In this document: positions 739-61,924 of the stretch, in pieces
Layout: every line of letters begins with the position of its first letter
Numbering within the stretch: position 1 is the stretch's first letter
DNA from: Octopus sinensis
Lineage: Eukaryota
DNA: 64,000 nucleotides
Assembly (NCBI RefSeq): GCF_006345805.1
Contig: NC_042998.1
Coordinates: forward strand, 154,132,001-154,196,000
Direction: 5' to 3'
Program-made: the position numbers and the translations under genes
The notes under the pieces: generated by a model
What the model saw: the letters and a program-made list of their open reading frames with translations, nothing else
What the model was told of the DNA's origin: nothing
Database searches by the model: none

Positions 739-811
739 GAGAGTGCCAGATGGTTGTGCTTCAAAAAGTCCAGCTGAGAAAGGAGCTTCACCTTCTTATG
801 TACCAACTATG
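739..811 (+). CDS. SH3BP2: Internal coding exon of an SH3BP2/3BP2-like SH2 adaptor ([x]RVPDGCASKSPAEKGASPSYVPTM)
   Basis: Polypyrimidine acceptor tttctttttt cttttaag at 721-738; donor gtttgt at 812; 73 nt, phase 2 to phase 0; joins the next exon in frame; contains the (R)RVPDG motif. Confidence 0.6.
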
Positions 812-1398
812 GTTTGTTTTGTTTGTTTGATATTCTTTTTTTGTAAAGATTTCAAAATTAAAATCTAAAATATTGTTTTGAAAAATTAATATATTTATTT
901 TTAGTTCTTGTTGTGCAGCCTTAGGTCATCTCCAGTTGATTAGACATATGACATGTTGTCTGAATGACCAAGTGCAATCCACAGACATGCTAGTTCCCAA
1001 TATATAAATAAGGGTTATCAAAAAATATACTGCACACTCTGACAATCTATGGTTGATTAAATGTTGTACAGTGTTGCCGTCTAAACAATTTGTGCTCTGT
1101 CAACTGTCTAATCTGATTCTCTGTGTCTGTGGTTTTTGATGATAATCACAAAAGAAGCATGTAAGGTGAACTCAGTGTGACGTTGGCAACCACTGCTCCT
1201 CAAAACTTATTACTGGTGCTGTGCATCCTAGCATAATGTTTCTGGTAAATAATACAGTGCATAAGTACTTGGAGAAGTCAGTTCAGCTGATTGTCTTGGT
1301 TTCCTTTATTTACCCCATTAAAGTACTTCTATTATTATCATTACTTTAATGAGCTTCATTATTGTTATTTCATTAAAGAACTGATTTTCTTGTTATAG

Positions 1399-1434
1399 AT
1401 AATATCTGATGAACCTCCAACAACCACCATGAAA
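1399..1434 (+). CDS. SH3BP2: 36-nt coding exon (IISDEPPTTTMK) of the SH3BP2-like gene
   Basis: Acceptor ttttcttgttatag; consensus donor gtaagt at 1435; phase 0-0; open frame continuous with the flanking exons. Confidence 0.6.
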
Positions 1435-2552
1435 GTAAGTAATTTATTTTGTATAAAGTTTTCTGTTCATTTAAAATCAACCTTTCTATGATCCTCCATT
1501 CAGTACTGTGTTGTGATTTTATATGTGTATATATCTCTATATATATAAAACTGAGAATGTGTCTGTCTGTCTGTGTGTTTCCCTAAAACTTGAGAACTAC
1601 ACAACCAATTTCATTCAAATTTTACACATGCCTTACTTAAGGTCCGGGGAGTGTCATCGAAAAAAAATTTTTAACTTTTTCCCTAGGGCGACCCTACATC
1701 AATATCATATCTTCTCCACTATTTCAGTATTACGTGTTAAAAGTGAAACAAAAACATCTCTCTATTGTGATGCAGACACTTTCACTTTAATACTGAAACT
1801 ATTAAAGTGAAAGTATTATATAACAGGGATGAACCATTAACAGTGGTCATCCATTTTGCTAGAAGAAGATCCGCTATGGTCTTATATGCTACACCACTGG
1901 TTTTCAATTCATATTAATCAAACTAATATTCAATTTTTCACCCTTATTATTGTGTGTGTGTGTGTGTGTGTGTGTGTGTATTAGCAATTCGTATAAAATT
2001 GCATCAATGACTTGAACTTGAATAAGTGGTTTCACATAAATGGGGATAAATTAAAAAGGTTTGTTGTTATTATTATTACTGTTTGACTATTGTAATCACA
2101 TTTGTTGGTTCCTCGTCAGGGAAACGTTGTTGTGTTGCATTTGTTAAATAATTGTAAACCGTAACCATCCCCCTTTTGGAGAATGGGCTTTGGTTATTGT
2201 TTAAAAATTGAATTGTGTCCCTGTTTGGGGAAATTGACAATATTTTCACCGTCTTTACGGAAGCATTTTTGTTAAAATGCCTTCGATAGAAGAAAGTCCA
2301 AAAAGGAATTTCGCTGCAGCCGTACACTTCTATACAAGAGGGAGGACAAGATACAATTGATCGAAATTGCAAGAGACGAACCTACAATTCCAGTCTGTTA
2401 TATATTTTGAGTATTGTTATCACTAGCGATATCAAGATATAACTTTGTATTTTGTATTTTATGTGTAGATGTATATATATAGATGTACATGTAATATGTA
2501 CACATATATAGATGCATAATATATCTACCCATACACACATACACACACACAT

Positions 2553-2700
2553 AGGGGAAAGTGTGACTGTGTGGTAACAAACTACGTTCCAAACACATGG
2601 TCCTGGGTTCAGTCCCACTGTATGGTGACTTGGCATGTGTCTTCTGCTGTAGCCTCAGACCAACAAAAGCCTTCTCAGTGGATTTTGTACATATATACAG
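2553..2700 (+). mobile_element. 5' part of a tRNA-derived SINE within the Helitron span
   Basis: A-box-like tgactgtgtgg and B-box-like ggttcagtccc; homologous to the full SINE copies at 43555-43938 etc. Confidence 0.7.
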
Positions 2701-58300: not shown

Positions 58301-60929
58301 CCATTGAAGCCTCTCAACAATCTCACCAGACCTACCTTTCAATGTGCCATCAATAAGTGTACCAGCTCTGAGGGTATGAAAGGTGTGGGCTGGCAAGACT
58401 CTGGGATCGGGAACAGCAGCATTATGCATATGAAATGAAAGCTTGCATATGGCAGATTTCATAAGCATACAAATAGCCTTCAACCTGCATACACTACACC
58501 ATCATTTTATTCGCTTCATAATCTCTACATTCAACAGGAGATAGACACTAGGTAGGGATGGAGGGAGAAGAGAGGGGGGAAGGTGCTCCATATAGTAAGC
58601 CATTTGAGGTGCTCAGGAGTAAGACATTCGGTAGAGATCAGAGGATAAAGACTTCCAGTATAGGTGGCATGAGTGGGATGGGAGGGTACAAAGCAAATAG
58701 CAAAGGACTGTGGCAGCCTTATTCCCTAGCAAAAGCTGATGTGACATAGCCACAGACAAAGCAAGTTACTGATTAACAATCAACATGGGAAAAGTATGTG
58801 GTTAACAAAACAGAGACGGGGAGAGCAGTGAAATTTTCCAGAATTAGGGCTGGTCAAGGAAACAGTGGGTCATTTGGATAAGATAGCAGGTAACAAAACA
58901 GAACATGAAGAGATGGAATTTTTGAGATTTAGAGTAAGAGTAAACAGAATTGAACAATTGGATTTCTTAACTTTCCTATAACATATTGCTAAATGAATAA
59001 CAATAATAATTATAGAGAACACTATAGAGTGAAACAGAATTGAACATTTGCATTCTTGACTTTAACTATAGCTATAACTATAATATACAGTATGGAGTAA
59101 GTCAAACTCTGTGACAAAAATAGATAAATAAATGAATGAATAACAATAATAATAATTATAATGAGCATTAAAGTGAGAGAGAATTGAATTGAACTTAGGA
59201 TTTCTTAAGTTTACTATAACATATGGCATGAAATAAATGATACTGTGTGAGTACATAGATAAATTAAATTAACAAATAATAACAGTAATTATAATTTGCA
59301 CTGTAGTAAAGAAAATTAGCCTTTAGTCCATCTAGTTAGGAATAAGTGCTGTGTAGAAGTGCAGTTTACTGCTATAAGTAGTATATCTCTGTGTAACTAA
59401 TATTTCATTATCTTGAACTGAATTCTTCCCATAGACATAGCTCATGAATGCACTGGTCAATTGAGTTAATCATGCACTAATGACTGCATCTTATTGTGAA
59501 TGTAAATCAGTTGATATTTTTTTTATAATACAGTGAAAGAGGTGAAATAAATATCAGAGATGCTTTTCCCCACACAGAAACTGCAGGAGCTCTTCTAAAT
59601 CCATCGCAATGCTGAAAACCCTACCATATCATTATTATTGATTGATTCATAAAATTTGATTTAAATAGTCTTCAACCCAATGAAGACTATAATACTGACA
59701 TATGAATGGACAATACTGTAAAGCATTTAGTAGCACTCTATCATTATTGCTAACTTCATTTGCAGTAATACTGAAGGGATTGAGTGTGCTGGTAGCTAGG
59801 GGAGAGAAAGAGAAAAAGGGAGAGAGAGAGAAGATGAGAAAAATTTTGTTGTTTTTTTTTGGTGGTTTTTGTGCTATATATTAGAAGAGAAAGAATTCTG
59901 GACGTTTCTGGAGAGGAAGTATTGGGAAGTGTTTATTGAGTCTAGAGAGGGATGATAGGAAAAGTTGAGTTGGATAGAGAGAGTGTAATTAGAATTGTGA
60001 GGCCTAGCAGTTGTTGTGATTTTGACTGTCTCAATTGTGTGCAGTTCAAGCATAATGTTGCATCATTGTTTACTTGATAGGTGTAGTGCTTCTTGATGCC
60101 AGTTAAGAAATTCAAATTATGTTCTATTTGGGACAAGATTTCTGCTCAAGCATGTATGGCACAAGGTGTCTATGCTGCATGTGGATAATACCTATATAAG
60201 AAATGTAAAGAAGGAGTGTGGATTAAACGGTGGCGGGGGGCTATAATTAATACACATTGCAACAAAGCAGACTGGTAAGAAACAGCAAAGCTTTGAGAAG
60301 GCACTGGATCATGGTGTAGAGTCTTCACATAGGTAACTTAGCTAGGAGGTACTCATGGTTAATGATGATTGTTTACAACAGTTTCTGTTAGCTCTGTGAA
60401 TGGTGAGAATTAGGTGAGAGTTAATAGAATCAGAGAACTTGACCTTGTAGTAGATGAGATACACAGTCACACATTTCTGCAAAGTGGAATAAATAGATGG
60501 TTATAAAATTCTAACAGACACTGATAGTAATGGAAGGAACACCATCAGAACTGGCTTCATCTACAGGTATGCTGCTTTACAGAGTTAACTTGTAAATCAG
60601 CTTGCATCATCAATACACGAAGCACCCTGTTTTCCTGACAGGTATTCTGTAAGCATTGTGGAAGTGACTAAACTTCTCACTGGTGATGCTGAATGATTTT
60701 CTGCAGGTGTCTAAATTGTTGTGCATGAACCACCTTGGGAGTTAGGATTATGTCCTTTAATTATGAGGTGTATACAGGGACATACCTAGAGGATGGTTTC
60801 AGTCACCTACTGTCCTACTTTTGATGCATCTTAACCCAAGTGCATTTATTGCCAGTGTTAATCAGCATAGAACTAATCAGTTGCAGAGAGTTCAATAGGA
60901 AGGGATTATGTTTTCAGTGGATTAGGCAT

Positions 60930-61560
60930 CCACCTCTTTTTCCAGGATATCCTGTGGAATTATGGTTTCTGTTAAGTGAGATCTACAAGAGACTGTCCTC
61001 TGTTTCACTCACTAGTGGGCTTTTCACTCTCAATATATTTGGTGAAAATAAGTACCTGTTATCAGCAAAGCATTCTATTGTGTTTGATATGCAAATTTCT
61101 TAGTTAAACTATTTTCCTATGTACTTCATCTGTCTGTTGTCTCTTGGGTCAGAAATTTCTGTACAATTACATCATAGTACCATGTGCTGGTAAGGTCTCT
61201 TTGACCCACATTTTGTCACCTTTGAAGTGCTCCAAGGTTTGGTATGGTCCCTAACATTCATCCTCCTATACATCAATAATCTACTTTCCTAAACTGCTGC
61301 ACCTATAAAAGAAACAATTCAATACACCACTCACTCATAAACATGAATATGTGACTAGAATTCTAAGGCTGCTACAGTATCACTTCAGAGCCAGAAAATA
61401 CTTCAGCTCCCCAAACTAAGTAACAATTTTAAAAATGCATATGAAACCCACATGTCACCAGACAGATTGGTATGAAGTCACTTGCCAACTTAGTCTTACT
61501 GATGTACTGTCTCATCAATGTGTATTCCTTACTGTAGAAATTCTGCATTTCAACCATAAA
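60930..61560 (+). pseudogene. Heavily decayed CR1/Jockey-group LINE RT remnant
   Basis: ISKAF..V...NFLVKLFSY...VVSWV.NF and a frameshifted VPQG...LLYINNL-like motif at ~61040-61285. Confidence 0.5.
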
Positions 61561-61750
61561 TGACCAACATTTTAAATTCCATAATTGGAGCATCAACCCT
61601 ATCTATTCTTGCTTATTTTAACCTAGAGAGATTGTACCTAACAGGTTAGGGCAATATACCTGTCTTCTTCCAAAATAATAATTAACAGCTAAAAGCTTGT
61701 GGAGTTTCAGTGCTGACATCTAAAATTTATTTATTTTTTTCTTTTTGCAG

Positions 61751-61924
61751 AAACCAAAATATTATCTTAAAAAAGGAATTGAGTTCAACTCTTTAGAAGA
61801 GCTTATTTATCATTATTTTTATCATAGCATATCAAATGAATATGAGTCAAAGCTGTTGACACCTTATACATATATACCAAACTGGGAAGCTGTTCTTGAA
61901 AAATGTATGCAAGAAGAAAACTAA
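61751..61924 (+). CDS. SH3BP2: Terminal coding exon (KPKYYLKKGIEFNSLEELIYHYFYHSISNEYESKLLTPYTYIPNWEAVLEKCMQEEN*), SH2 C-terminal half
   Basis: Strong acceptor ttttttctttttgcag; phase 0; YYL...F.SL.ELI.HY...L..PY SH2 signature; TAA at 61922-61924. Confidence 0.9.
   Translation, partial: KPKYYLKKGIEFNSLEELIYHYFYHSISNEYESKLLTPYTYIPNWEAVLEKCMQEEN

Follow-up and report, generated by a model that had tools for sequence, protein, structure and literature searches.

Which gene ends in the 64-kb stretch of the Octopus sinensis genome considered here (contig NC_042998.1; the whole stretch is called the window below), and to which family does its product belong? A sequence-only reading of the window had proposed that six small exons, spread between positions 739 and 61924, form a hidden gene for an adaptor resembling SH3BP2, also called 3BP2. 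On the evidence gathered here, the window very probably carries the last six coding exons of the O. sinensis locus LOC115232387, the gene of a cytoplasmic PH-linker-SH2 adaptor that belongs to the SH3BP2 family by descent.

The 160-aa peptide encoded by the spliced exons was compared with 1.8 billion representative sequences using HMMER, and it was found to be residues 139-298 of a 298-aa protein, with 100% identity over all 160 residues (E 3.3e-102). This protein is XP_029658105.1, described as “uncharacterized protein LOC115232387 isoform X5” of O. sinensis. The exon model thus equals that of RefSeq, where the gene has its annotation and lacks only a name. The word “hidden” holds for the list of open reading frames (ORFs) made for the window and not for the RefSeq annotation, in which the gene was already present; what results is a better annotation of an existing RefSeq gene and not a new discovery. 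Nor is six the full number of exons. No coding DNA for residues 1-138 of XP_029658105.1 is found in the window, so LOC115232387 extends upstream of position 1, and what the window contains is its 3' part.

Within the window the gene lies on the + strand, and its junctions were derived from the DNA letters, the splice signals and the frame. The exons from 739-811 to 61751-61924 lie where the sequence-only reading had placed them or where the exon lengths that it gave would put them, and two missing exons were recovered by search:

739-811, + strand: exon 1, 73 nt, with AG at 737-738 and GT at 812-813; one base finishes a split Leu codon, then RVPDGCASKSPAEKGASPSYVPTM; the product matches residues 139-163 of XP_029658105.1 at 100%
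1399-1434, + strand: exon 2, 36 nt, phase 0 to 0, AG/GT; a short linker exon, IISDEPPTTTMK, which matches XP_029658105.1
46529-46590, + strand: exon 3, 62 nt; the first SH2 exon, AMVDDYWKAFEFNGPKEVSM(K), which stops 2 bases into a Lys codon and spans the N-terminal helix with a family-invariant YW, betaA and the start of alphaA
50907-50976, + strand: exon 4, 70 nt; (K)LLTALEESGAYMVRESENKVAPK, spanning the remainder of alphaA, betaB with the putative phosphotyrosine-binding Arg (YMVRES), and the BC loop
51318-51386, + strand: exon 5, 69 nt; betaC and betaD, TLLVYCAELKRTQKYQIFYESTP
61751-61924, + strand: exon 6, the last coding exon, 174 nt (171 nt plus TAA at 61922-61924); KPKYYLKKGIEFNSLEELIYHYFYHSISNEYESKLLTPYTYIPNWEAVLEKCMQEEN, spanning betaE to alphaB, the BG region and the C-terminal helix
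62052-62057 and 62067-62072, + strand: two AATAAA hexamers, about 130-150 nt past the stop; candidate polyadenylation signals, read from the sequence

Every acceptor is an AG that follows a pyrimidine tract, all internal exons have a GT donor, and the donor sequence is GTAAG or GTAAT in four cases out of five. In the hunt for exon 5, 16 open candidates of the form AG, 69 nt, GT were found between 50980 and 61750, and a strong acceptor tract together with a GTAAGT donor is present in 51318-51386 only. The spliced exons amount to 484 nt, the first base of which closes a codon begun upstream; read from base 2, the sequence stays open for 160 aa up to TAA, and both other frames are full of stops. 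An open frame through six exons with such splice signals is far beyond chance. The six exon lengths, the AG/GT junctions and the 160-aa product put forward by the sequence-only reading are borne out by the letters and by the RefSeq identity, and the two stretches that it had singled out, GAYMVRES and AFEFNG, are both present as described. It had also stated correctly that five of the six exons are missing from the ORF list: only the last exon falls within an ORF large enough for that list (61745-61924, 59 aa), which is why the gene is invisible there. The same exon is the best conserved with relatives, with tblastn matches from 11 family members. No second copy of any of the six exons was found in the window.

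The SH2 domain is the C-terminal domain of the octopus protein, and a PH domain, which the sequence-only reading had suggested looking for upstream, lies N-terminal to it in XP_029658105.1 (Pfam PH, 42 bits, residues 3-72). The HMMER search with the octopus peptide returned 14 proteins at E <= 0.001, and all good ones are lophotrochozoan; the informative matches come from Sepia pharaonis, a decapodiform, Biomphalaria, Gigantopelta, Lineus, Aplysia, Lingula and Haliotis. The PH-linker-SH2 order with a C-terminal SH2 was seen in 10 of the 10 proteins scanned by Pfam (the octopus RefSeq protein and nine relatives), and the PH domain is whole in the decapodiform relative (P0016). SH3BP2 or SH3BP2-like is the name given by NCBI to the proteins of Lingula (XP_013383314.1), Biomphalaria (XP_013063547.1), Gigantopelta (XP_041371048.1), Lineus (XP_064630841.1) and Elysia; the Sepia protein CAE1289025.1 has no name. 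These lophotrochozoan SH3BP2 or SH3BP2-like proteins share the octopus architecture, have SH2 domains 30-37% identical to that of the octopus, and carry the invariant YW ahead of the SH2. Sepia also has, in common with the octopus, cephalopod-specific insertions in the BC loop (..N[KV][VE]APK) and between betaD and betaE (..[TS]PKP).

Other searches reached less far. A word-indexed homologue search with the 160-aa peptide gave no match, and with the family profile it gave lophotrochozoans only and no vertebrates. When it was seeded with the segment of the solved human SH3BP2 SH2 domain (2cr4), mostly short mammalian genomic ORF fragments were obtained, and no full-length vertebrate protein. 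Literature searches found nothing on an invertebrate SH3BP2.

Some of the relatives call for comment in their own right. The Aplysia californica protein XP_005098098.1 (P0009) is labelled “interactor protein for cytohesin exchange factors 1” (IPCEF1), has the C-terminal SH2 of the family and aligns throughout. The best matches of the family PH profile in the PDB are FARP1, SKAP55, PLEKHA5 and IPCEF1, and no SH3BP2 PH chain is found among the matches. Because IPCEF1 stands among the best, the Aplysia name probably comes from PH similarity, and the label looks like a PH-driven misannotation. In Sepia pharaonis, two products (P0015 and P0002) differ by a 14-aa insert, TIPVPLEQASSFPK, directly ahead of the SH2. 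The difference points to a cassette exon where the octopus gene has its 45-kb intron; a search of that octopus intron for such an exon gave chance matches only. The Haliotis homologue (P0014, 714 aa) is extended at its N-terminus, ahead of the PH domain, by about 390 aa that have no counterpart in the other members, and one Pfam scan matched the PH and SH2 domains only.

The SH2 domain itself is well formed. The window peptide scores 38.1 bits against Pfam SH2 (cut-off 21) over residues 56-125, and the stop comes 35 residues further on. From an 11-sequence family alignment, AlphaFold2 predicted an SH2 fold with a mean predicted local distance difference test score (pLDDT) of 92 and a predicted template modelling score (pTM) of 0.85, with a helix added at either end; helices of the model lie at residues 2-9 and 17-27. 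The betaB5 Arg, by sequence the phosphotyrosine-binding residue, is retained in the octopus domain (GAYMVRES) and is invariant in the 11 family members (R36 in alignment numbering). All family-invariant SH2 residues are in fact kept in the octopus, namely W8, G31, R36, L47, K59, Y90 and L103.

The start of the domain is atypical. The Trp of the canonical betaA motif, W[YF][HF]G, has no counterpart in the octopus, which reads EFNG. In relatives the site is occupied by Y, F or H ([YFH][YFW]xG, with YYHG in Sepia and FWHG in Lingula), and mammalian SH3BP2 reads VF[IV]NTTESCEVER there, without Trp (sequence P0032, and a mammal-like contig, L001). The sequence-only reading had stated that the human domain lacks this residue, and this agrees with the real mammalian sequence. 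Since the Trp is absent in relatives and mammals, its loss is a trait of the SH3BP2 family and not of the octopus alone; unlike the Y, F or H of most lophotrochozoan relatives, the Glu at this position is peculiar to the octopus. An invariant YW lies 4-5 residues before the betaA Trp site in the invertebrate members, in the predicted N-terminal helix, and may substitute structurally for the missing Trp.

The family of the SH2 domain was assessed with a profile built from 11 family SH2 domains. Against the PDB, this profile matches the human SH3BP2 SH2 domain (2cr4) with 47.5 bits in one stretch, the best of any single solved SH2, and the next single-SH2 chains are TXK (37.6 bits), SHIP2 (36.7) and BTK (36.5). 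The total for PLCgamma-1 is higher, but two domains contribute to it, with 28.1 and 24.9 bits, and the matches of RasGAP and PLCgamma-2 are also divided between two stretches. In a local run of the profile, the mammalian SH3BP2 SH2 scores 48.5 bits, as against 22-29 for each of the four SH2 domains of a PLCgamma-like protein, and hhalign aligns the profile to the mammalian SH3BP2 SH2 with 98% probability. In a Foldseek search with the AlphaFold2 model, 2cr4 ranks first (E 9.3e-07). Together with the upstream PH domain and the relatives named SH3BP2, the profile result supports the earlier description of the product as an SH3BP2-like adaptor.

The strongest evidence for the SH3BP2 assignment is gene structure. 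A 6.8-kb mammal-like SH3BP2 contig (L001) was reached via a mammalian ORF fragment from the search seeded with 2cr4, and exons were mapped in it and in the Lingula gene (L002) by tblastn with a requirement for exact translation. The junctions compare as follows, a slash within a sequence marking the intron:

Start of the tankyrase-motif exon: octopus 739, [..G]RVPDG; L002 9940, [..A]RKSPDG; L001 2423, [..G]RSPPDG; common to all, one base of a split codon and then the motif Arg
Motif exon to linker exon: octopus 811/1399, phase 0; L002 10009/10228, phase 0; L001, no intron; octopus and Lingula only
Start of the first SH2 exon: octopus 46529, phase 0 (62 nt); L002 10507, phase 0 (80 nt); L001 2762, phase 0 (56 nt); same phase, 2-8 codons apart
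Intron in alphaA: octopus VSM-K(AA/G)-LL; L002 ANE(GA/G)-CL, 10586/10788; L001 EVE-R(AG/G)-LF, 2817/3049; common, phase 2 in a K/R/E codon
Intron before betaC: octopus APK/TLLVY; L002 NQQ/VLVVY; L001 SGK/VLVVW; common, phase 0
Intron in the betaD-betaE loop: octopus STP/KPKYYL; L002 CHK/PEEGYWL, 11512/11863; L001 FEK/DSKFYL, 3666/4001; common, phase 0

Four introns, those before the motif Arg, in alphaA, before betaC and between betaD and betaE, are thus identical in position and phase in the octopus, Lingula and mammal-like genes. The last of them is also found in many mammalian genomic ORF fragments (..PPQ/DSKFYLEG, the intron into the last exon). The sequence-only reading had spoken of introns at comparable positions; the agreement is sharper than that, the position and phase being the same for the three SH2 introns and the pre-motif intron. 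Between octopus and Lingula the likeness extends to the layout of all six exons, beginning with the tankyrase-motif exon and ending at the stop codon, the Lingula counterpart of octopus exon 1399-1434 being a 60-nt phase 0-0 exon in the same place; unlike vertebrate SH3BP2, the octopus gene has the extra intron between motif exon and linker exon. A PLCgamma-like gene (L003), on the other hand, has one intron per SH2 domain, after betaC (..VISLW/QEGR..), and none at the three intra-SH2 positions. As its introns lie elsewhere, the intron pattern argues against PLCgamma, the sole rival family at the single-sequence level. A separate observation concerns the splice signals of the mammal-like contig: at 2544-2548 an exon ending in ..DDDYEK is followed by GC and not GT, so that the intron before the first SH2 exon, to judge from the reading frame, appears to use a GC-AG splice site.

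Several findings weigh against placing the octopus protein with SH3BP2. In phmmer comparisons of the octopus sequence with the PDB, PLCgamma-1 scores 25.0 bits in total (21.1 for its N-SH2), Fgr 24.2 and SH3BP2 24.2, and in BLASTP the octopus domain gives 43.1 bits with a PLCgamma-like protein (P0013) versus 37.7 with mammalian SH3BP2 (P0032). Judged by these scores, single-sequence comparison does not separate SH3BP2 from the PLCgamma N-SH2, so a reciprocal best-hit check points clearly to SH3BP2 at the profile level and leaves the two about equal at the level of single sequences. The lead of 2cr4 over Vav2 and Grb2 in Foldseek is weak. The first residue of isoform X5 already lies within the PH domain, of whose 105 profile positions only 28-103 are covered, and the PH exons are outside the window, the domain being known from the RefSeq protein and not from window DNA. 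The 99.8% that hhalign gives for the family PH profile with a human SH3BP2 PH sequence is a lead only. The architecture of 3BP2 has been described as a PH domain, a stretch rich in proline and an SH2 at the C-terminus (PMC6521229), and its tankyrase motif as 415-RSPPDGQS in human, with the consensus Rxx[ACGP]xGxx (PMC9688111). In the octopus, positions 740-754 read RVPDG, where Gly comes fifth and not sixth, so that even the relaxed consensus is missed by one residue, and the 102-residue linker between PH and SH2 in isoform X5 has no PxxP.

The near-tie in single-sequence scores, which in places slightly favours PLCgamma, speaks for an SH2 domain from another family, whether PLCgamma-derived, STAP, BLNK/SLP-76 or Grb2/Vav-like, with a merely superficial likeness to 3BP2. 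The octopus SH2 is about 35% identical over 86 aa to the N-SH2 of a PLCgamma-like protein, its top or equal match among single sequences, and the Foldseek E-values of Vav2 and Grb2 fall within about 10-fold of that of 2cr4. Compared per domain, however, the family profile favours SH3BP2 by about 20 bits over the PLCgamma SH2 domains and by about 10 over any other single SH2. The PLCgamma N-SH2 also stands in a tandem SH2 pair inside a phospholipase, begins with a canonical WFHG and has its one intron after betaC, whereas the octopus protein pairs a PH domain with a terminal SH2, has neither catalytic nor SH3 domains, and has its three SH2 introns elsewhere. STAP1 and STAP2 are small adaptors of similar size, in which an N-terminal PH domain is followed by an SH2 domain; no STAP or BLNK chain is among the 60 best SH2 profile matches in the PDB, BLNK has Foldseek rank 22, no STAP chain is among the PH profile matches, and PH domains of the STAP and Tec types are absent or marginal there. 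An origin from another SH2 family is accordingly very unlikely.

In all three genes the homologous exon opens, from its first full codon, with the tankyrase hexapeptide (L001 2424-2441, L002 9941-9958, and octopus 740-754, shortened), and the Lingula motif, RKSPDGQS, is near the human one. Motifs of the type Rxx[ACGP]xG occur twice in Lingula, Lineus, Gigantopelta, Owenia and Sepia, and in a decapodiform, the first directly behind the PH domain and the second some 40 residues ahead of the SH2; no such motif was found in the linkers of heterobranch snails and bivalves. The octopus retains a canonical first motif, RSLPEGSS, just after the PH domain and outside the window. As the pre-SH2 motif is cut to RVPDG, any tankyrase control would run through RSLPEGSS. 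The PxxP motifs vary likewise, with 9 in the Lingula linker, 10 in that of Lineus and none in Aplysia and Haliotis. Lingula, Lineus, Gigantopelta, Owenia and Sepia thus differ from octopus X5 in having an intact second tankyrase-type motif and some PxxP, and X5 lacks the very PxxP motifs that gave 3BP2 its name.

In humans, cherubism is caused by mutation of the RSPPDG hexapeptide of 3BP2, which blocks its tankyrase-mediated destruction. As X5 has no PxxP and its RVPDG is short, neither “SH3-binding” nor tankyrase control via the cherubism site is transferred to the octopus protein, and the name SH3BP2 family applies by descent. It is conceivable, and offered here tentatively, with the odds somewhat against it, that tankyrase control of SH3BP2 is older than the vertebrates, and that the octopus adaptor, by the loss of one codon in the pre-SH2 motif, escapes tankyrase there, in the way that heterobranch snail and bivalve adaptors would with both motifs lost.

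Descent from the SH3BP2 family could also take a looser form, in which the lophotrochozoan PH-SH2 proteins are a paralogue or co-orthologue of SH3BP2 and not its one-to-one orthologue; the functions of vertebrate 3BP2 would then not be transferable. The small, lophotrochozoan set of good matches among the 1.8 billion representatives would fit this, as would the 28% SH2 identity to mammalian SH3BP2, the gain and loss of PxxP and tankyrase motifs within the family, and the presence of more than one product or locus each in Haliotis and Owenia. Yet direct descent from a single ancestral gene is the simplest explanation for a motif at the first full codon and three same-phase SH2 introns, the Lingula RKSPDGQS is almost the human RSPPDGQS, and no second PH-SH2 family of such type appeared in the homologue searches. 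A paralogous origin is therefore regarded as improbable.

If the octopus adaptor works as vertebrate 3BP2 does, its PH domain would bring it to phosphoinositide-rich membrane, and its C-terminal SH2 would dock on tyrosine-phosphorylated partners downstream of Src/Syk-type kinases. Tyrosines of the acidic linker (EEAIYDDI, with a conserved IYDD, outside the window) could, once phosphorylated, dock other SH2 proteins in turn. The likeness to vertebrate SH3BP2 (human P78314; 2cr4) is considerable: both have an N-terminal PH domain, an acidic unstructured linker and the SH2 as last domain; both SH2 domains keep the betaB Arg without the canonical betaA Trp; the three intra-SH2 introns and the intron before the tankyrase-motif Arg agree; and 2cr4 is the best single-domain profile match as well as the best Foldseek match. 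The differences are also clear. Besides the low SH2 identity, human SH3BP2 has 561 aa as against 298 in octopus isoform X5, and RSPPDG where the octopus has RVPDG and no PxxP SH3-binding motif. Mammalian SH3BP2 has Asn at betaD4 where the octopus has Lys, and it lacks the octopus Glu at the betaA Trp position; the octopus C-terminal helix extension, NWEAVLEKCMQEEN, sets it apart from vertebrate SH3BP2.

The 45-kb and 10-kb introns contain only mobile-element remains and simple repeats, including long (AT)n tracts. The following features were distinguished:

52569-55100, - strand: pol ORF of a long terminal repeat (LTR) retrotransposon inside intron 5, uninterrupted, 843 aa, with reverse transcriptase, RNase H, integrase zinc-binding and integrase core domains
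56182-56985, - strand: further reverse transcriptase fragments
3453-4163 (+ strand), 5775-6149 (+ strand), 21728-22636 (+ strand), 27795-28781 (- strand) and 34541-35911 (- strand): mobile-element ORFs of the 45-kb intron
15373, 19631, 24861, 26728, 31254-31846, 38028, 41397, 42649, 48583 and 51729, both orientations: a 62-66-bp unit, GGTGCTTTTTACGTGCCACCGGCACG..GGCAACGGCCACGAACGGAT

The LTR-retrotransposon pol gene looks recently active. The ORFs of the 45-kb intron comprise a fragment of a PIF1-like helicase (Helitron-type), a GIY-YIG domain (Penelope-like element) and several non-LTR reverse transcriptase fragments, one of them with a PHD-like finger. The 62-66-bp unit forms short tandem arrays at at least 10 places, often adjoining (AT)n tracts of 200-800 bp, and its 9.6-copy array at 31254-31846 gives a spurious ORF of 237 aa. 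The long intronic ORFs were considered as host genes and rejected, every one with a Pfam match proving to be a transposon domain; no host gene was detected in the 45-kb intron, and an Rfam scan of the window gave no RNA family at threshold.

A gene spread over such introns might be a decaying or mis-predicted fragment in a transposon-rich region, giving no functional protein, and the degenerate tankyrase motif, the lack of PxxP and the start of isoform X5 inside the PH domain could be taken in the same sense. Set against this are the open frame through six exons with good splice signals, the retention of all family-invariant SH2 residues, the confident fold prediction, and five RefSeq isoforms, which suggest transcript evidence. 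Decay or misprediction is thus exceedingly improbable.

The assignment does not overturn current views. It allows a RefSeq locus of the octopus so far called “uncharacterized” to be named an SH3BP2-family PH-SH2 adaptor, and it indicates that the gene structure of an adaptor known mainly from work on the immune cells and osteoclasts of vertebrates is conserved across Bilateria. The motif that is the hot spot of cherubism lies at a conserved exon start and has been repeatedly lost in molluscs.

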